DNA of 64,000 nucleotides from Pocillopora damicornis (GCF_003704095.1 NW_020845410.1:558001-622000); one strand, 5' to 3'; counted from the first letter of the stretch, positions 2,874 to 29,751 are shown. Program-made: numbers and translations. Notes: generated by a model not told the origin, from the sequence alone.

Positions 2874-4486
2874 AAAACCTTTCATCTCGTGCAAGGTTTC
2901 AGGGAAATCATGAGGTTTTCACAAAATGAAAGTAACAATCATGGGTCACTTATACTTCAGGAGACAAATTACAGTTCATGCTGATTCATAAATTCAGTAC
3001 AAATAAATCCTTTACCACCCTTGGAAAGGAATAATAGTGATGTATGCTAAATACAGATTGGAAAGTACAACTTGCAGAACTATAATATGTGCCCTACCTT
3101 AATTTTTTAAGTTCCAGAATGTTTTCTTTTCAATTCATTCTCAGTTCAATTTTGCTGCATGACTTAATTTACAGAAGTGATTCCAGGGAAGACATGGCTT
3201 CTCTCTACTCCCTTTCAAAGAAAAACTTGTCCTCTGCTTTAAACGCTTTTAAACTGCTGTTTTTTGTAGACTGTTGATTACAGAGGAAAAGGGGATACTC
3301 CAACAGTAATTGTGGTCTGACTTATGGTTTTACACATGCGTGATGAATAACAATGAGTTGTGTACCGTGAATAACCATAGAAATTGCTCCAACATAGGGA
3401 GGTAGGCTTTACTCGGTGAACAACTCTCCATTGGTGCCATCTTTTCTCAAGAAGAACTTCTCAAATTGATGGATACATATGTAAGGGTGGTGTACAATTT
3501 TGCACGTTTTGCATCATTTTATTGTAATTGGGAATAATTCAATCAAAGCATGGAACAAAATGATTATTTATTCAGTATATATCTGTAACTGTGAAACGAG
3601 ATGACATATGTTCTTATCTTATCGTATTTGAAATACTAAATAAATGATTCTTTAGTTACTTATGAGTTGTGAATCTTGTTAGAGTTTCTGAAAGCCTGAT
3701 ATATATACCTGAAGCTTGTGGTTTTTTTTACCAGTTCATCTCCATTAATCCATTAAACCACTGGGTTGTATACTTTCCCCCACTTGCCATTTTTCAAGGG
3801 ACCTTCGGTGTTTTTGACTTGTGAGGTGGTTTGTTTTGTCTCGTTTAGCTGTGTCGACAATCTAAAATCGTATCTCCATTATCTTCATCATTTAGAATAT
3901 TTGATCTTCTCGTCATTGGAATGTTGCTTGCGGTCCGAAGCTGTCAAACAAATAAAACTTTGACGCAGTATGCACAAAAAGCACTTTTTTCGAGCTCAAA
4001 ATACAGATGTGGCAACCACAGAGTACATAAACTGTTTAAAATTCCTTTCACGTATGTGTCCACTCGGTTTATAAGACCCCAACCTGATAAACCCAGGTGT
4101 GACGTTACAAAAACCAAGCTGCTTCCATGGATAGCGAATTTTTTCAATGTTCCTCTTATGTTTAACCTCGGAGCTTCAGGGGACAGAGGTTTAAGGGGTT
4201 TTAGGGTAAAGTAAAGGTAAATGCAAGTCACCGATCGCATTCGTTTGGTATTCACCCAGCTTTCAAAAATTTTGATCATTCTTTCATGAGGCATTGGCGC
4301 CCCTCGTTAAAATTTACCCCCACGCAGTGCAATTGAAAGGGGGAAATGACATAGATGTGTTTATATTGGGAAAGAAAATTTTGTAAATTTGTACAAAACA
4401 CCTAGGGAAAACAAACTCCAATTATAATAAATCATGAAGGAGGAGAGGACAACAATAATAAATAAAATTATCGCTTTTGTTGGTCA

Positions 4487-7920: not shown

Positions 7921-15166
<7,246 letters not shown>

Positions 15167-15510: not shown

Positions 15511-15628
15511 TGCTGAAGAACCTCCTTTGCAAAATCATCAAATAGTTTTATGTTTCTACAGTTAACATAGATCACCACAGTACGTCCGTCAGAATTCAGT
15601 ATGTCGTTTGCCACTTTAATCGCCACGG
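15511..15628 (-). CDS. Fragment of STAND NTPase paralog A (just after Walker A), isolated between gaps
   Basis: Translates VAIKVANDILNSDGRTVVIYVNCRNIKLFDDFAKEVLQ, which aligns by eye to TAVKAVNEILDADSETVVAYVNCRFLASLDDLAGKIAKQ in the 22658-24334 gene. Confidence 0.8.
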
Positions 15629-17341: not shown

Positions 17342-19366
17342 TGAAAAGCCAAGATTTTTACACGATTTTGTTATTGGATAATTTTGAATTTCTTCTTCAT
17401 TTGGATGACAGAATGCAGCTCCCCGAAAATGAATTGTCACTCCAGCAGATGAACCCATCTGAGGAAGGATCGAGGATTAAGAAACTAATCAATGAAATTT
17501 TAAAGGTTGCAGGCAAAGTCAAGCTTCTCCTCACTTCTTCAGAGAAAGTTTGTTTTCCGGAGGCAGGTCGAGAAATGGTTCATCTGTCGCCTTTTAAGCC
17601 AGAAGAATCCGTTGAGCTTTTTAAAAGAGTTTGGAAGGATAGGCAAGTCGACACAACCCAAGCACATGGCTTGTCAGAGATTTGCAGTGGTATTCCCCTG
17701 GTCCTTTACACCCTGGCCTCCTCCCACAATAACCTGCTAAGTCTCTTGAAAGAGATGACCTGTTCTTCGCCTCAAGAAAAATTCGAGTTCTTGACAAAGA
17801 TTCGAACGGTATCAGAGGATATGAAGATCAACGTTTGTATCGATTATTGCTTCGAGAGGCTTGTTTCGAAAGAAAAGTGTGCCCTTATCAGATTTGCATT
17901 ACTTAGAAGGCGTTTTTCTCTGTGTGAAGCAGAGAAAATATTTCAATCAACGGAGATGAGTGCGTCCCAGCTCAGACGATGTGGACTGGAACTGTCCCAG
18001 CGATCACTTTTGGAAGAACACATTATTGGAGATGAATGCTCCTATACCCTCCTTCGAGTAATTCGTGATTATTGTGAAACTAAAGCAATGGAGCAGGAGT
18101 TTTGTGAAGTGATCTTAGATGCTCGGAGGGCGTTTATCCTTCATTTTTTAACCTTTCTGGAAGACATCTTTAAAATGTTCCTGAGCCAGAACGCGTCAGA
18201 AGCTATTGCAGCCTTTCAGAAAGATGAGGCAAATGTCATGCAGCTCGTTGAATGGTGCAGAAATGGTAAAATGGATGAAGAACAAGCAGGAAAGTGCATT
18301 GATGTTTTCAACAACGTGGCGGAGCTACTGGCGAAGATGATGGCAAAGGCCAAATTTAAATTTGCCTTTGAATCTTTACGAACGAGATGCGAACAGATGG
18401 AAGATCAGACGAGACTGAGCGATTGCCTCACATCCTTGGGGATGAAAGAAGTATTCAGCTGCTCCTGTCCTCCAATTGGTCTGTGTGCTTCCGCCGCTGA
18501 AAGAGCCAAAGAATACTTCACGAGGGCTGACCAAATCCAGGATAATCTTGGAGTTAGAACCGGTAACAGCCGAGCTCAGTGCCTTGCCAAACTTGGTCGA
18601 TGTCTCGCCAAAGAAGGCTATTTTGAGGAGGCAAATGAAAAAGTCCAACAGGCAATCGACATTCGATGGGCTCAAGGAGAGAATGACATCGTTATGCTCG
18701 GTGCAACGTTTAATGATCAGGGAGGTAAGTGTACAGAATGATTAAGTACCAAATTAATTTGCGAGCACAATGATCATACATTTTGCAAGGCAGTTTGTGA
18801 GATCGTATTTTAAGGTTATATTGAGCATTTGTTTATGTATGAATCTTCAAAATCGATGATAAAAGATTCACGATTGAAAATGATGTACAAATTGTGGCCT
18901 GTGCTCTGAGCGAAAAAAGCAAGAGAAGCATCCAAATCCACCATTATGATTCTAGCCTCTCATTAGTCAAGATTCAACTGAATAGCCGTCATTCATTTAG
19001 TCTGGACCTTGAAAGGATGCTTAGAACATTGAGAAAGTGAATTGTATTGAAAAGTGTCTTGATAATTGTAATCAACTACTAGATAAACGAAATCCTTCAC
19101 ACGAATTATAATGTATACTACTTTAAAGGGGTTTACGGCTGCTTCAAAAATCCTTTCTTTAAGAAAACTAAAATCACTTTTACTACCTCTCTTTATATCT
19201 TCATGGTCAGCCGAAAATGACTGAACTGGAATTATTGTATTATTTTATCACTTCTTGAAGGATAAGCATCTTTACATATTCAGTGATAAAACCGTGATTT
19301 CCTTGTTAGTGATCCTTTCGCTCGAGGAAAATCATGAGCAGGCAATCAAGGTCAGAGAAGATCAGA
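17342..19366 (+). CDS. STAND (NB-ARC/AP-ATPase-like) NTPase-TPR protein, paralog A, partial (exons 17342-18724 and 19310-19366+)
   Basis: Walker B ILLLDNFE, sensor LLLTSS, GxP motif CSGIPLVL, winged helix ELSQRSLLEE, and TPR helices (RAQCLAKLGRCL...AIDIR). Phase-1 donor GGAG|GTAAGT at 18724. The next exon VILSLEENHEQAIKVRED matches paralog B VALSLEGNHEEAIKVREG. Both ends are truncated by N gaps. Confidence 0.88.
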
Positions 19367-21176: not shown

Positions 21177-24100
21177 TTATTGTAAGGTGATCGACTTTCC
21201 TTCTTGCCCAAGATCATCATCTGATTTCGTGAGTTTTTCTTTTCCTTCGTTGAGCATGCATTCCTCCACCTCTTTTATGGTTCTGTTCGAAAAGATCATT
21301 TAATTTAAGAGGTCGATCAAAAGTTTTGTGGATACCTCTAGATTTTAGACTGAACACGAGGCAACTGCTTCATCTTGCCAGGACTTATTCCGGCTTCGTT
21401 TGCGATAATTAGCCAAGAGTAACTAACACTTACTGGATGGCATGTTGGTCTATTGGTTTCTCACCGTCATAGTCATCCCCATCATCCTCATTGTCATTAT
21501 CGTCATCGTCATCGTCATTGTCGCCATGTATGTCGATGACGTTATCTTCTCTAACGAAATCTTCGTTATCGATATGATTGTCATTATCATTATTATAACC
21601 CCGGGCCTTTCGATTCGGAGTCGATGCGTTAACCATATTTGACTATAATGCTTCCTACAGCTTATTGCAAACACTGCAATTAATTTAGGTGGAATTTGCA
21701 AGAATGAAACCTAGTGGCATTGTTAAGGAAATTTGCAACATTTCACGAAACCAAAGACACAACAATTTTGTTTAGAGGAGGTAAGATCTATACTGTTTTA
21801 TGTTCGCTCACACTGAACGCGAACCAACGCAAAAAATTTTTAGCTGAGAGCTTACTTGAACTGTAAGTTCTTAAAACCGGGAGCAAGTAAATTCAATTTC
21901 CTTCGTTTTTTAGCAGACATGTTTCAGAAAAAAATGTTTCCTAAGCTAGATAAGGACGCAGCCTGTCTTGGTACCAATAGAAATGAGAACGAGTATGTAC
22001 CTTAACAAGCTCTCACGCAGCTTACAGGATTACCGTGTAAACTAACCTTTCAAGCTCGCTGATCATGGTAGGGTCATCCAGAAACCTTTGCATGCTTTCA
22101 CATTCTCTCAGGTAAGCTTTGGCATCCTTGAATTCTTCCCTATTTTTGTGAACCATCCCGAGATCAAACAAGGACTTAGCCGTGTCGTAATGGTCTTTCA
22201 GCAGCTCACGCCGAATCTTCAGCGCTTCCTCTGAATATTGTTTGGCGATGTCGTACTCACCTAGGGCAGAGTAGTTGTTGGACAGATTGTTCAGGATGGT
22301 TGCCGTAAAGGGATGCCGGTCTCCCAAGTGTTTTCTGTATATTTCTAACGTCTCTCCTTCTCTAACTTTTATGGCCTCTTCATGGTTACCCTCAAGGGAG
22401 AGAGCCACTAGACAAAAAGGAAAAAAATTCAAACACTTGTTTTCTGGAAGCAGAAAGAAATATGTTCGTAAGGAAAGGAGCTGAAATACTTTCTCAAACT
22501 GATAAAGGTGGGGGAATACTCGCAAAGGTGGGAAGGGGCGAACTTGCACTGAGGTGAAATATCCACAAACCAGAAAAATTTTTATACAACGCTTTGTTGA
22601 ATTTCCTGTCGGCTTATTCAGCTTGAGAAGAAAGTTTAAGTACGAAACCTCACCCACCTGCTAGGTCATTGTATGTTGCACCTAACATAACAATGTCTGC
22701 TTCCCCACGTGCCTTTCGAATGTCGATCGCCTGTCGAATCTTTTCTTTTCCTTCAGTGAAGCTTTGTTCCTTTACGAGACACCGACCAAGTTTGGCAAGA
22801 CATTGAGCTCGACTGTTACCAGTGCTGATATCAAGATCACATTGGATTCTATCGGCCTCCAGCAGATAGGGCTTGGCTCGTCCAGCAGCTTCATCACACA
22901 GGTCTGGAGAGCAGCCGCAACTGAACACTTCCTTGATTCCCAGGGACGTGAGACATTCTCCCAATCTCTTGGGATCTTTACTTTCCTTACACTTATATTT
23001 CAGTTGTGTAAAGGCGCCGTCAAATGTTTTCTTTCCCATCATTTTGCCAAGCAGTTCTCCCACCTTGTTGAAGACATCGGTGCACCTTTTCTCTTGATCT
23101 TCCTCCATTGAACCTTTTACACCAAACCAATCGATGAGCTGCATAATGATTTCATCTTCACGTCGGTATTCGACGATAGCCTTTGAGACATCAGTGCTAA
23201 GGAAGCTCTGGAAGGTTTCTTCAAGGAAACTGAGAACGTAATTGATGAACATCTTACGGGCGTCGGAAAACACTTCCTGGAAAGGTGTTTCTATGGTCTT
23301 GTTCTGGCAGTAGAGGCTGTATACTGTGAGGATACTGTAATGATATGGGTCGGAAATATGCTGCTCCAGAAACGACCTCCTTGCTAGCTCATCTATCGCA
23401 CCTCTTAACTCGGCAGACTTCAGGATTCTTGAAGCTCTTGAGGTGGTAAAGAGACCTCTGAATACTGTTAGAGACACAAGGGTATTCTGATGGTGTGTAT
23501 CTAGTCTCTTGAAGCAAACGTCGATACAAACGTCGATCTTCTCATCTTCAGTTGCATCTGAAATTCTTGTAAACTTTTCTTTGCGGTCCGGGTTCGTCAG
23601 CATTTCCAGAAGATCTGTTGGGTTATCCTGCCACGCTGCCAAGGCAAACAGGACGAATGGAATACCTCCACAACAATGTGCTATTTTGCAGGCAGTTTCT
23701 TTTTCCAGAGGGGTGTCACCATAGACCTTCTTCAACAGTTGTAAAGAATCATCTTCATTGAAGGGAAGCAACTTGATCCACTGCTGACCAGTCTGAAGGA
23801 TATCGATATTCTTCGATGAGGTCACCAGCAGATGCGCTTTTTTTGACTTTGTAGCGATGTCTCTGAAGAACTTCATGATCTCTGTCTTTTCGGATGGAAA
23901 TCTTCTTTCAGCCTGCATCTCCATGCTTCTTCCATCGTCCAACTGAACTAAGAATTCAAAGTTGTCGAGCAGCAGTAGAGGATGGAAATTCTCTTCTTCA
24001 ATAAGGAGACTTTTGATTCTACCAATTGCCGGCTCTCTGAAAGGGAAGTGGTACAGCTGCTTGGCAATCTTCCCAGCGAGATCATCAAGGGAGGCCAAAA

Positions 24101-24995
24101 ACCTGCAGTTTACGTAGGCAACCACGGTCTCGGAATCGGCATCTAATATCTCGTTTACCGCCTTGACTGCAGTTGAAGTTTTCCCCATACCGACAGACCC
24201 ATGTAACAGGATGCATCTACAGTCGTTCTGTGAGTCGTTCTTATTAAGAAACCGTTTTATCTCGCTGAGCTCTCTCTTTCGGTTGACGAAATGTCGAATA
24301 GGACGTGGTAGCAAAGACATCTCTCTACGGACGTCTGAAATATGAAATCATGTACTTTTCGTTATTCACAATTGGTACGTTTGGAACGAGGTTGTAGATT
24401 AAATTGGGTAATTTTGTATTATCAACTGAGTTGAAAACGTAAATTGGCCACCATAAAGAGTTTCAAAGCTGACGTTTCGAGCACTAGCCTCTCGTCGAAG
24501 CTACTGGTGGGAACATGGTAACAAGAAAAACAAGAATAAATTACTTGAATGAAAAGTGTTTGTTTATACCTGAGGATAATAGTGCCGATTTGAAAGATAA
24601 ATTTTTCCTTCAGAGGTTTACGGCTTTCCAAACTGCCTGGATGTAAAGAAAGGCCATAAACTGCCATATGCTCCTGAGAATGATTGGGGAGATTAAAGAG
24701 TCTAACGACCGGTTTGGATGCGTCCTTGTCATTCCTTTCACGGAATCAGTCACCTAGCCGTCTTCCTGTTTAACCATTGTATATCTTTTTGTTATTTAAG
24801 TCGTTATTGCGAGCTTTTAGGTGATTCAAAATGGAATCTTTCAATGTAATGTTACCTAGGCCGTTTTTACCGCTAATCATAGATTCATGCAAGACCGACA
24901 CTGTTTAATACCTGTGGGATGCTGAGAAGGTATGTATTCCTCTTCCTTGCCATCTTCTTTTTGTCCTCCTTCTGTTTCCTCAGAGTAATCAGAAC
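21177..24995 (-). CDS. STAND (NB-ARC/AP-ATPase-like) NTPase-TPR protein, paralog B (exons 24995-24912, 24334-22658, 22407-22047, 21282-21177)
   Basis: Walker A LHGSVGMGKTS, Walker B LLLLDNFE, LLVTSS, CGGIPFVL, ELARRSFLEQ, then kinesin-light-chain-like TPRs (HPFTATILNNLSNNYSALGEYDIAKQYSEEALKIRR). Exons join in frame via phase 1/1/2 GT-AG introns. The 84-nt acidic linker exon has a phase-1 acceptor, so an upstream coding exon is required. The terminal exon is less certain. Confidence 0.9.
21460..21597. repeat. Degenerate (CAT/CGT)n trinucleotide tract
   Basis: Runs of tcatcgtcatcgtcatt...; this tract produces the spurious Asp-, Ile- and Met-rich ORFs in the track. Confidence 0.7.
24395..24502 (-). 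repeat. Dispersed repeat (Penelope-like terminus) with a degenerate hammerhead-like motif
   Basis: GGGTAATTTTGTATTATCAACTGAGTTGAAAACGTAAATTGGCCACC...AGCTGACGTTTCGAGC. The same block recurs at ~27140-27223 and ~36410-36501, and inverted at ~54390-54490. Confidence 0.55.
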
Positions 24996-26313
24996 CTGGA
25001 AAAGACAACACAAGAGTGAAATAAATGGAATCAGGTAAGTATTCCGTCCATGGGGATCCACAAACCGAAGGCCAGAAAAAACTTTTTTTCCAACCACCCA
25101 CGAAACAGCAAAGTCCTGTAGACTCAGAATTTTCACTGATCTTACTCGATACGGGCCCTCACCTGAGAGTACCACGCGTGGAATTAATCCACTTGAGCAA
25201 AATAATACAACTAAATCTAGCTTTAAAAATATTGAGTGGAAGCTTGAATAGCAGAGTTACACCCGGCTGTGATAATAATTCATCTAATACATGTTACCTA
25301 GTGTCTCAGATTTATACCAAACAATAATTGCTAGACTAAATAACTCGCCAAAAGGTTNNNNNNNNNNNNNNNNNNNNNNNNNNNNNNNNNNNNNNNNNNN
25401 NNNNNNNNNNNNNNNNNNNNNNNNNNNNNNNNNNNNNNNNNNNNNNNNNNNNNNNNNTTAGCTCTTAAATACTTTTCGTGTGACGTTGTGTTATTGAAGA
25501 CTTTAATTCCAAAGTATTCTATTCGCTTCGCATATTTACTGTAGATAAGATTTCTGTCAAACAGCCACCTCTAATTGGCGGACGGGGTAAACCTTTAGTC
25601 TTACTAAACTTATCAGGACCTAAATATTTAGTTCCATCATGTGTGATCCACCATGTCAAACAATCACCCCCACTTTTGAAATTGTGCCCGAGAAGATGGA
25701 ATGTTCTGGGCCCCAGAACATTCCGTATTTATTCCATTGTGGTTATTTAAACTCTCGCCGGTGACAAGCACACTCAGTGTTTGTTTCAAAGAGAAGCGAA
25801 ACTCTCGTTTACAGATCATTGTTTCCTATTCATTTAGCTTATTTCACTTCACGAAGACACTTGCCTCACTAACATAGTTGTTTGCAAGAAGATATAACCG
25901 TGTTATTAGGACAACTGTCGAATTCAATTTTCAAAAAGTGTCAAGCTGATTTGCGTGATGCCTTTTATAACACCCTCGTAAAAATCAATCTATATTTTTT
26001 CAGTAATTGTTTTCATTAAAGCTGAAAAGCCATAATTAATGAGGATGTGGTAATTAAAGATACTCTATTCAGTAATTAATAAAAAATAAATTTAATTGTT
26101 TGTTTATCGATGTATAGTTTGCTTTGGTACTACTTTAAGCGCCGTGGGGTGAGGCGAATTTCTTGTCTTGCATTCTGTGAATCTCGGGAAAATGACTCAA
26201 AGAAGGAAAAGGAAAAAGCCATCCTACGGCCCTTTCTCGATTGACATTAAATCGCAAATCAGAGAATATTGCATGACCTTTTAAACTTTTTTTGCAGGAG
26301 ACGCACAAACGAA

Positions 26314-27052
26314 ATGGCAACTGCTTTTGCCACAGCTAACCAAGAGCTCCGTTCAACGTTTGAAAACGAAAATTATCAGCGTCTTTCTCGACTGATTATG
26401 CGTGCGGGTACCGAGTTATTGAGAGCACAGTTTGACTCCTTTTACCCACCAAGCAGTCTCGCCAACAAACTGAGTGAGTTTGCCACCAAGCAAAAGTTGC
26501 TCCACGTTCTCCTGAAGCCTCAACGTGATCTTGTTTATCCAGCAACAGGATTGTTTGGAGAATCAAGAGACTTTGACATCAGCCTCCTTTCTCAACTATT
26601 AAAAACTCTTTGTTCGACGCAACTACCTCCTCTGCGCAGCGGATGGGATCGTCCCCCAAGTAGAGATGATTTTAGCTTGACTGCAGACATCGTCAGAATT
26701 AAGTTTTACCGCAATGATATTATTCATAAGTTTCACAGTGGAGAGTTGAGTGATGCAGAATTTTGTTCCCTCTGGGATGAAATCAAAATAGTCCTTTTAC
26801 GTATAGCTTCCCATATCAGCGCAGAAGCAAAACTGGAATGGGAAGAAGCAATCAACAAGCTGCGGCATGATCCCTTAACCCCAGAGGCTGCAAGAAATGC
26901 CGAGGAACTACAGGAAATGTACCAGAAGGACACAGACACAAAAGAACTTCTCGCTCAAGTGGTGAGGCAACTTCAAGACGTGAAGAATCAAAATGAACAG
27001 ATTCGCAAATTGGTGACAAATCGGGCTGGCTCTTCATCGGCAGAAGGAGGAG
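26314..27052 (+). CDS. DZIP3/hRUL138-like HEPN domain plus coiled-coil exon (probable N-terminal effector exon of STAND-TPR paralog B)
   Basis: Acceptor TTTTTGCAG at 26297, ATG at 26314, phase-1 donor GGAG|GTAGGT at 27052. The sequence NYQRLSRLIMRAGTELLRAQFD...SRDFDISLLSQLLKTLC...GWDRPPSRDDFSLTADIVRIKFYRNDIIH fits the DZIP3-type HEPN pattern (FDI-LL, GW--P---D-S, RxxxxH). A heptad-rich helix follows. Confidence 0.85.
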
Positions 27053-29751
27053 GTAGGTTTAAGGAAGAAATTGTTTTACTATAAGAAATACATTGAATAT
27101 TGAATTACATAGCCAACTTCGCCATTATAAGGGTAAGTCTCTAAAGAAAAAACTGTGCTGCTGTGTCGATGGGAAAGTATAACAGGGTAATTTAGTTTTA
27201 TCAACTGAGTTGATAACGTAAATNNNNNNNNNNNNNNNNNNNNNNNNNNNNNNNNNNNNNNNNNNNNNNNNNNNNNNNNNNNNNNNNNNNNNNNNNNNNN
27301 NNNNNNNNNNNNNNNNNNNNNNNCAATAAGGTGACATATTCTTAAGATCAAAAACCTCGTTTGGGTAATTGTCTTTGTATTCCGTACGGATGAACGCGTT
27401 AACAAAGGGACCTCTTTTTTTCCCAAACATTATAACGTACGTTACAGCGACTAGCAGTGAGTGTTAGTGAAAATATTTTTTTGAATTAGGATGTTCCGCG
27501 ATGGAATTCGAGCGCTAGTTAAGGGACGATTTGTGAAATTTAGTGACTTCGGCGAACAAAGTTCCGAAAACTTGATAGTTAGTTGAAGTTTTAAAGTCTA
27601 AGTTTTGGTTTAGTTCTAAATACCATGTTTCCAATCCTGCAAATTCATGCGCGCTTGTAAAGTGAATCTGATGTTTTTCGACGACGCTGAAATTACAAAT
27701 AGAGAGCTAAAACCTTCACATTTGCCTTATTGCGTTACGTTGTTTTATTTCATTGTTTGAACTAGGGTTTTTTCCCTCCTCAACAGTGACGGCTAATGTC
27801 AGACATCTGACAGTTGATTCCATCTATTTTGCCATGAATCGTGATCCAAAGCACGATCTTACAAAATTATCCATTAATACAACATAAAATTATCGGAAAC
27901 ACTTTGACTAAGTTACCTACCTTACGCTTCTCATAGATTGGGAGATTTGTCTTGGTCGTTTTCCACACAATGTTTGTGGGCTCTATTGAAAGCGAAAACA
28001 CTTCCCGTCACGCTTCAAAGGGCAAGTAAATTAATGCTGAATTCCACAAAGAAAAATATCAGAAATCATATTTTATTCATGGCTTGTCTTCTTTTCCTTT
28101 TTTCTTTAATTAGGATTGAAAATCGCATTGAAGCACAATCTCGACCTGCATTAGAAAAATTCTCAGTTCCATATGATGGTGGCTAAATCCGACATGGATG
28201 AAAACATTGGAGAATAAAATACGTAAGAAAAACATTGCGTCATTTTTAAGTCGGGACTACAAAACTTCATAACAAAAATTCATGAACTGGAAATTTTTTC
28301 ACTTGATAATCTTCAGAAACCTTTAAAACAAATATTTTTTTCGCATCATCATCATGATTGAAAAACAACTGCTGTTGGATGAATTGATCAGCCGGTCGAA
28401 TCATGTAAGATATCTTGGTGCGTTTGGAATGATGTTAAAAGATTTGCATACTCGTTGCTGCAGATGTAAATCGTTTTAGTGTTGGTTGTGATTAACATTC
28501 CTAGTCACTGAAGCATCAATCAAAGAAACAGACTATTCAACGGAAGTCAAGTGTACCTTAACGGTCCTGAACAACACCCCTTTAGACACTATCCGCGATA
28601 CGTTTTCGAATCTGGGCGTCGGCAGGGCAGAGCTGATTAACAAAATGCTACGCCACAGGTATGCGGTCAGTAACGCGGGCTCAAGCGCACGAGGTTTAAA
28701 ATTCAGCTAAATTTGTGAAGAAGAAAGGGGCTGGCATTTAAAACCATGGTATTTTGTTGTCGTCGAAGGTATTTTCCTATTTGGGGGGTTGTTCTGTAAA
28801 AGGAAGCTAAGGCGGCAAGGAAAACAACGCCTCGAAGCAACAAAATGGAAATCAAACATGCAAACGACTCAAAATCCGTTTTCCGCAGTTTTTTCCGCGC
28901 CAAAGCGTGGCGCATGTACAGACGTTATTCAGCTCTGTCGGTGGTAGTTTGGACGAACATCGAGAAAGAACGAGCCTCTAGTGTATCAGCGGTGTCTCTA
29001 AGAATCGGATTGGCCTATGTATCCCGTGCGTTCAATTTGTTACGTAAAACCGTACAAACCAATAATTTCTATACCATTCATAGTCAACGATTGCATAAAC
29101 TAGAATGTCCGTTTAAAAATTGTACTTAGTAGAAATACTAAATCGATTGCCTCCCTTCTCTGACCCTCTAAAATAAAGGTTAAGAGGTGGGTAAAAATTT
29201 CCATTGGGGGTGGGGGAGGCTACAACTTAATTTAACTTATAATATAACCTTTTCTTGTTGAAATAGACAGGTGTCAAATTGCAATCCCAGACCCCCACCA
29301 CTTTCAAATTTCTACGCAAATGAGGTAGTGAATATTAGAGATAAGCAGGGTTAGGGTGTTACGTCAAAAATTGCACAGGAAAAGTACGTGGTGTGCTTCA
29401 CTAATGAGCTCCTAGTTAGGTTTCTCAGTCGATTAAAATGCTGACTCCATTCGCAGTGGAATCTTCCTCGGCTTTGAAACGACGTTCACAGCCTGAGGCG
29501 AAGGGAGACTATACGGTTTAAGGATTAAGAAAATTTAGATGTCCCGTATGGGAACCCAGGCGAATGGTGCATAATGCTTGAGCCAAGTGTGAGAGTTACT
29601 GGGCTCTCAGTGGTTGACACGTAATTATTTTACCGTTTAATTTATGATTTACTTCTGGCTTTTAAACGAGCTCTTATTCGTGGTTAATGTACTCATCAAA
29701 TATCATTGAAAGAAGATCCTTAAATTGTAGGAATATATGTAAAGACGTCAA

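Follow-up and report, generated by a model that had tools for sequence, protein, structure and literature searches.

The question raised by this locus is whether exons lying on opposite strands of one stretch of the Pocillopora damicornis genome belong to a single gene for a nuclease-armed, immune-receptor-like protein. The stretch, hereafter the window, comprises 64,000 nucleotides (GCF_003704095.1 NW_020845410.1:558001-622000; G000:C2045:558001-622000 in our own labels) of a 234-Mb assembly in 4,393 contigs, and it contains 12 gaps of N. An earlier reading, made from the letters of the window only (the sequence-only reading), had placed an exon for a HEPN domain of the DZIP3 type on the plus strand and a gene for a STAND (P-loop NTPase) module with TPR repeats on the minus strand, and had joined the two directly, from 27052 to 24995, into one protein of ~990 amino acids (aa). 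We find that the gene is real and expressed, with an intact RNxxxH motif and an intact P-loop, and that the HEPN exon is very probably part of one gene with the STAND-TPR exons. With a probability of about 0.85, this gene lies on one strand, has at least six exons and encodes a protein of ~1,148 aa in the order HEPN – TRADD-N – linker – NB-ARC – TPR. The class of protein named earlier, a HEPN effector with a STAND NTPase and TPRs, thus stands, whereas the exact join and the length of ~990 aa do not, since a TRADD-N exon very probably intervenes.

The analysis was based on contigs from two RNA runs of different studies (X1 and X3) and two DNA runs (X19 and X21), aligned to 21250-27223. The runs containing the window are labelled coral or marine metagenomes. 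Domains were searched by comparing Pfam profiles with each open reading frame (ORF) or exon separately. For the region of other assemblies equivalent to the gap at 25358-25457, gene tables and alignment coordinates were used, and the TRADD-N exon of L024, a more distant Tara contig with ~82-92% DNA identity to the window, was translated for comparison.

Continuity across the gap at 25358-25457 had been set as a test, and the flanks of this gap proved to be discontinuous as scaffolded. In other assemblies, position 25357 is followed by ~709 nt and then by 27223 read backwards. In the gap-free 306-kb contig L026, the 1,766-nt piece that carries the HEPN exon is inverted relative to both of its flanks, and according to the alignment coordinates the same holds for L027, L029 and L024. 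At least 23 contigs from other assemblies carry the exact 256-aa HEPN ORF. In all six contigs listed (L026 and five Tara scaffolds), HEPN_DZIP3, TRADD-like_N, the 556-aa NB-ARC ORF and TPR lie on one strand, with the TRADD-like_N ORF ~290 nt 3' of the HEPN ORF and a convergent paralog after the TPR ORF. A DNA contig of the same species (X21 record 21) continues for 249 letters beyond 25357, none of which align from 25458 onward. The opposite-strand layout, which had been taken as the arrangement of the gene, is therefore a scaffolding error in which a piece was placed backwards, and it carries no biology. The gene looks split over two strands because the contig with its HEPN exon was scaffolded backwards and its TRADD-N exon, very probably, was lost in the gap.

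The missing exon left its trace in the RNA. One contig (X3 record 29) matches the HEPN exon over 192 nt without mismatch up to 27052 and then continues with 87 letters that differ from the linker exon, contrary to the predicted RNA junction from 27052 to 24995. Thirty of these 87 letters encode APLRIIIDVE in the HEPN frame. This 30-nt loose end found no match in the window or in L024 (each with up to three mismatches allowed), nor in the whole assembly (up to two). The TRADD-N exon of L024, in turn, starts with APLRIIIDVR, identical to the RNA-encoded peptide at nine of ten residues, a link at the protein level only. That exon (L024 positions 3249-3728) is 480 nt long (160 aa) and phase 1-1, with AG at its acceptor and GT at its donor, and scores 38.8 bits against TRADD-like_N (PF20694; cut-off 23.7). 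The same profile gives 33.8 bits with P0003, the protein of L022, a Logan transcript of an ortholog that is 82% identical in the NB-ARC part and whose ORF is open at the 5' end. This transcript reads TRADD-N, directly after it the linker (GSDYLDEREAEQ…), and then NB-ARC and TPR. We had considered the 5' end of L022 as the end of a HEPN exon and rejected this, as it sits within the TRADD-N exon. In the letters of the window a TRADD-N exon was not found by tblastn, and no ortholog-grade one was found anywhere in the assembly, where nothing comes closer than a paralog at 47%. The exon is very probably missing from the window because it falls in the 25358-25457 gap. With the L024 exon in its place, the coding sequence comprises 739 + 480 + 84 + 1677 + 361 + 103 = 3,444 nt, or 1,148 codons, and all of its exon junctions were observed in this species apart from that between TRADD-N and the linker, which comes from the 82% ortholog.

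The HEPN exon itself agrees with what had been described from the sequence. Its ORF (26314-27052, plus strand) scores 104.8 bits with HEPN_DZIP3 (PF18738; cut-off 27; E 4.5e-30) over profile positions 4-142 of 144, and the R-N-D-I-I-H motif is intact and in frame. In an alignment of nine sequences, namely the window gene, seven paralogs of the same genome (27-45% identical) and one ortholog, residues R133, N134 and H138 are invariant. The exon is transcribed, with RNA contigs in both runs (X3 records 28 and 29, X1 records 6 and 7), and its donor after 27052, 739 nt from the ATG, is in phase 1, as had been proposed, and is used in RNA, the match of X3 record 29 stopping at this position. X3 record 28 carries 125 extra letters 5' of the HEPN acceptor that lie outside 21250-27223; the gene therefore has a 5' exon elsewhere. 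Once the piece is turned, an exon of the 5' untranslated region (UTR) is expected beyond 27324 on the minus strand.

The AF2 model of the HEPN exon has a pLDDT (predicted local distance difference test) value of 85 and is helical throughout; residues 190-240 form a long helix at its C-terminal end. An exhaustive VIA-align search returned as its top match the HEPN domain of Csm6 (4rgp_B; Z 8.5, root-mean-square deviation 3.5, 117 residues), and further HEPN proteins were spread through the top 33 rows (6tug, Z 7.3; Swt1 4pqz, Z 7.1; 2hsb, Z 6.3). A profile search of PDB sequences returned nothing. Compared with L024:2175-2957, the HEPN exon (26314-27051) is 84-89% identical and shows an indel of 15 aa in the coiled coil, while the NB-ARC exon is 96% identical. 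From these sequence identities, the effector end of the gene may be evolving faster than the NTPase.

On the minus strand, the exons downstream of the gap are joined in RNA. The joint 24334/24912 between the linker and the NB-ARC exon is present in both RNA runs, in agreement with the 84-nt linker exon and phase-1 acceptor that had been postulated. All three introns (24335-24911, 22408-22657 and 21283-22046) have GT..AG ends on the minus strand and were seen in both X1 and X3, that is, in two studies. X3 record 25, a contig of 3,545 nt, reads linker, NB-ARC, TPR, last exon and 3' UTR in this order; it has 1,477 letters past 21282, and the 3' UTR extends for ~1.4 kb toward lower coordinates. 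The frame is open from the phase-1 linker acceptor (24995) through to the stop codon at 21179-21177. In one X3 RNA contig, 24993 is joined back to 24910, i.e., it goes back by 84, and the linker exon is repeated. According to collinear alignment this exon is single-copy in other assemblies, and the repeat in the contig is either a back-splice (circular RNA) or an assembly loop.

The domain profiles expected for this part of the protein were also recovered. Within the 556-aa ORF at 22650-24320 (minus strand), NB-ARC scored 30.8 bits (cut-off 23.5; residues 16-232) and AAA_22 32.9 bits, while NACHT reached 25.5 bits and thus remained under its cut-off of 26.7. The translation contains the P-loop GSVGMGKTS (24174-24200), a Walker B sequence LLLLD and a GLPL-like GGIPFVL, with a helical region after these. 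Strict assignment to the animal NLRs (NOD-like receptors; NACHT plus LRR) fails, as NACHT is sub-threshold and the repeats are TPR rather than LRR. Judged by these profiles, the protein is NLR-like in design and is excluded from the NACHT-LRR proteins in the strict sense. The features of the locus and its alignment to L026 are compiled in Table 1.

Table 1. Positions of exons, motif, gaps, assembly piece, flanking alignments and repeat at the locus, in window coordinates.
Feature	Position	Strand	Evidence and remarks
HEPN exon	26298..27052	+	AG acceptor 26296-26297; ATG at 26314; HEPN_DZIP3, then long C-terminal helix; phase-1 donor 27052/GT
R-N-D-I-I-H (R133..H138), HEPN Rx4-6H motif	26710..26727	+	Sequence reading, in frame with ATG 26314
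Acidic linker exon, 84 nt, GSDYSEETEGGQKEDGKEEEYIPSQHPT	24912..24995	-	AG acceptor and GT donor, phase 1-1; RNA joint 24334/24912
NB-ARC-type STAND NTPase exon, 559 codons	22658..24334	-	Pfam; RNA contigs X1 record 4, X3 record 25
TPR exon, TPR_12/TPR_10 units	22047..22407	-	Pfam TPR_12, E 3.1e-21; RNA joints 22407/22658 and 21282/22047
Last coding exon	21177..21282	-	Stop 21179-21177, frame check; X3 record 25
Mis-oriented 1,766-bp assembly piece with HEPN exon	25458..27223	+	Exactly bounded by two 100-N gaps
Gap, 100 N	25358..25457	.	In other assemblies ~709 nt with the TRADD-like_N exon link 25357 to 27223 (L026 10911-11619)
Gap, 100 N	27224..27323	.	True order links 27324 to 25458, 5' of the HEPN exon
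L026 411-2313	29243 to 27324	-	Upstream flank
L026 9145-10910	25458 to 27223	+	Whole piece, 1,766 nt, 100% identity
L026 11620-17066	25357 to 19914	-	STAND-TPR gene
High-copy repeat at piece end	27185..27223	+	Second copy 24406-24444, 92% (repeat search)

Several observations weigh against the gene as reconstructed here. No single RNA contig of X1 or X3 covers HEPN through NB-ARC, and the junction from TRADD-N to the linker is known only from the 82% ortholog, which would leave room for HEPN–TRADD-N and TRADD-N–STAND as separate isoforms. In word searches, neither the NB-ARC ORF nor P0003 (residues 1-175, or the whole protein) yielded an annotated full-length protein with the four domains, a point that is weak in view of length limits and exon-level ORF calls. 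A contig of the same species (L025, reached via P0001) begins at the NB-ARC ORF and is uninformative for the upstream part. On the side of function, the usual position of the sensor-1 arginine reads LLVTSSKN (TSSK) by our own reading and has no Arg, from which the behaviour of the NTPase may be atypical. The Z score of 8.5 to Csm6 is within the range usual for helical bundles, weak though consistent with the fold, and Foldseek found no match to the HEPN model in the PDB.

Could the gene nevertheless be assembled in another way? If the HEPN exon were spliced directly to the linker (27052 to 24995), a HEPN–STAND–TPR protein of ~990 aa without TRADD-N would result. Other genes in the genome do encode HEPN–NB-ARC–TPR without TRADD-N, and both this join and an isoform skipping the TRADD-N exon, itself phase 1-1, would be in frame. 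However, because all internal exons are phase 1-1, an in-frame join is no evidence for that junction. The sole RNA contig that uses the 27052 donor enters TRADD-N-like letters, TRADD-N precedes the linker in the orthologous transcript, and no 27052/24995 joint is listed for the aligned X1 and X3 RNA contigs; we consider a direct splice very improbable. Two separate transcription units, one for a short HEPN–TRADD-N product and another, started internally, for TRADD-N–STAND–TPR, would leave no polypeptide with both HEPN and STAND. The lack of a contig covering all exons would fit such an arrangement, as would the annotated relatives from Oculina and Desmophyllum (684-853 aa, without HEPN) and the fact that P0003 was called from an internal Met. 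Yet the ORF of P0003 continues without a stop to the 5' limit of the contig, which falls within the TRADD-N exon, the HEPN donor is joined to the first codons of the TRADD-N exon, all exons are phase-compatible, and RNA contigs on both parts occur in the same runs, so that two units appear improbable. That the inversion is a genuine structural polymorphism of the sequenced individual, with the HEPN exon an orphan or trans-spliced, is what the scaffold as given would say, and the locus is indeed structurally variable (an upstream indel of 6.8 kb in L026 vs ~105 nt in L024). We find this scarcely credible: the two breakpoints fall precisely at the two N gaps, a high-copy repeat lies at the end of the piece, another wrong-strand fragment flanked by gaps is present at 15519-15626 (the P-loop of a neighbouring paralog), and the 249 letters of the X21 contig past 25357 do not align from 25458 on.

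A different kind of alternative accepts the gene as described and takes its HEPN domain for a non-nuclease, i.e., an RNA-binding or protein-interaction module, with the output passing through adaptor signalling by TRADD-N. RNA cleavage by a DZIP3-type HEPN was not found reported in our literature search, these domains are termed RNA-binding or predicted RNase (PMC10236652, PMC3710099), and in vertebrates TRADD-N serves as an adaptor in signalling from death receptors (PMC8195603). Catalysis, on the other hand, is favoured by the invariance of R, N and H in the motif over paralogs that are 27-48% identical, and the catalytic residues of the family are given as "mostly conserved" (PMC3710099). 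A non-nuclease HEPN is a possibility to be taken seriously, if on the unlikely side.

Returning to the single-strand HEPN–TRADD-N–linker–NB-ARC–TPR gene, we looked at its relatives in the same genome. HEPN_DZIP3 matches number at least 74 in the assembly, and several fall within ORFs of 950-1,670 aa. The uninterrupted ORFs L019 (951 aa) and L020 (958 aa) encode HEPN_DZIP3–NB-ARC–TPR; as these are single ORFs, the architecture is independent of any splice model. The closest HEPN paralogs are 41-48% identical and each is followed by a TRADD-N exon, and 5 of the 15 TRADD-N matches in the assembly closely follow a same-strand HEPN exon. What comes after HEPN–TRADD-N differs: PARP14-like KH and Macro domains in L013 (C1462:527700-537700), and TPR in L015 (C2969). 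The arrangement of these sequences suggests that an effector-adaptor cassette spread by exon shuffling. The HEPN exons of the closest paralogs L013 (C1462), L015 (C2969) and L014 (C386) end in "…GG" like that of the window.

That DZIP3-type HEPN domains occur with STAND modules in invertebrates, as the sequence-only reading had stated, is borne out by earlier surveys. The DZIP3/hRUL138 HEPN is fused to TPR, NACHT, CARD, DEATH and LRR and is expanded in Nematostella (Anantharaman et al. 2013, PMC3710099), and in many cnidarians, P. damicornis among them, no other partner of NACHT is as common (Emery et al. 2021, PMC8260672). Many coral NLRs have an N-terminal DZIP3-like HEPN, and NB-ARC is paired with TPR (Noel et al. 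2023, PMC10236652). In cnidarian TRADD-N proteins, the HEPN lies at the N-terminus and the C-terminal part varies (Kaur, Iyer, Burroughs, Aravind 2021, PMC8195603). Fusions of HEPN_DZIP3 with NLRs and of HEPN with TRADD-N in cnidarians have thus already been described in silico, and the gene in the window is an ordinary further member. A functional test of the HEPN_DZIP3 family was not found in our literature search, and the exact order HEPN–TRADD-N–NB-ARC–TPR was not found named in the main text of PMC8195603.

With the cnidarian HEPN-NLRs the gene shares an N-terminal HEPN_DZIP3 on a STAND NTPase, C-terminal repeats, the anthozoan expansion and the pairing of NB-ARC with TPR. It differs from them in having TRADD-like_N between HEPN and NTPase and at least six exons, L019 and L020 being single ORFs. 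The TRADD-N expansions (PMC8195603) have in common with it a HEPN, a TRADD-N and a variable C-terminal module, and L013 and L015 fit the description of that paper, whereas in the window gene the variable part is the NB-ARC–TPR module. The regulators of HEPN RNases such as RNase L / Ire1 KEN, Csm6 and Cas13 are an ankyrin-pseudokinase, CARF or CRISPR RNA (crRNA), in contrast to the STAND NTPase with TPRs of the window gene. They likewise possess an Rx4-6H HEPN, and their activity requires the pairing of two HEPN units. Sequence identity between these RNases and the window HEPN is ~8-10%, and its RNase activity is a prediction. The bacterial Avs proteins combine an N-terminal nuclease-type effector and a STAND NTPase with a TPR sensor and oligomerise upon ligand binding. 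By analogy, the window gene would follow the same effector–STAND NTPase–TPR logic, but most effectors of Avs proteins are DNA endonucleases, and TRADD-N is absent from Avs. Among the PADLOC models, no family matched the NB-ARC exon or the HEPN exon at E <= 0.01.

On these analogies, and in line with the sequence-only reading, a probable mechanism can be proposed. The TPRs and the helical C-terminal region would sense a ligand, and ATP-dependent oligomerisation of the STAND module would gather the N-terminal HEPN domains. Paired HEPN domains would then form an Rx4-6H RNase site and cut RNA; as a result translation might stop, the cell might die or viral RNA might be lost. TRADD-N may act as an adaptor or a switch between NTPase and effector, after Kaur et al. 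(PMC8195603). A wider reading, which we hold tentatively and with more doubt than confidence, is an animal STAND receptor that operates in the manner of Avs or RNase L. Its TRADD-N, an exon cassette shared with the HEPN–TRADD-N–PARP14-like paralogs, would permit different HEPN–TRADD-N proteins to co-assemble into one death or antiviral platform, and the run of phase 1-1 exons would have enabled the shuffling of effector-adaptor cassettes among coral immune genes.

For users of the genome, the immediate consequence concerns annotation. The assembly is fragmented, and mis-scaffolding affects the present locus and probably others; gene models derived from this scaffold will either lack HEPN and TRADD-N or break the gene up. 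Few putative immune receptors of corals have expanded as much as the STAND proteins armed with HEPN_DZIP3, and an expressed, intact copy with a defined exon structure is a reasonable construct for RNase and oligomerisation assays. No new principle beyond the earlier comparative surveys is implied.

Repeats are prominent around the inverted piece. A very high-copy short repeat occupies 24250-24850 and 27050-27223, and many contigs join both places. In each of the four runs, RNA and DNA alike, the word depth at 24250-24650 and at 27050-27223 is in the thousands. The repeat is probably an element resembling a miniature inverted-repeat transposable element (MITE) in the introns of the gene, and its copy at the end of the piece probably broke the assembly. 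Upstream of the HEPN exon in L026, a contig of the same species, the 6.8-kb interval L026:2314-9144, located between window positions 27324 and 25458, contains THAP and DDE_Tnp_4 ORFs (Harbinger-type transposase). The same interval measures only ~105 nt in the relative L024, and the insert has the look of a polymorphic transposon that landed close to the 5' end of the gene.

Convergent to the gene studied here lies a paralogous NB-ARC–TPR gene (17342-19366, plus strand) of 45-46% identity, whose N-terminal part is lost in gaps. A 108-nt (36-aa) P-loop/NTPase fragment of this paralog is found between gaps (15519-15626, minus strand), 10 kb from the inverted piece; the remainder of the paralog runs on the other strand (17350-18717, plus strand), and the fragment is probably a second mis-oriented mini-contig. 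An unrelated neighbouring gene is represented by an exon at 13253-13552 (plus strand) encoding part of a protein kinase domain (Pkinase/PK_Tyr_Ser-Thr), which looks MAP2K-like.

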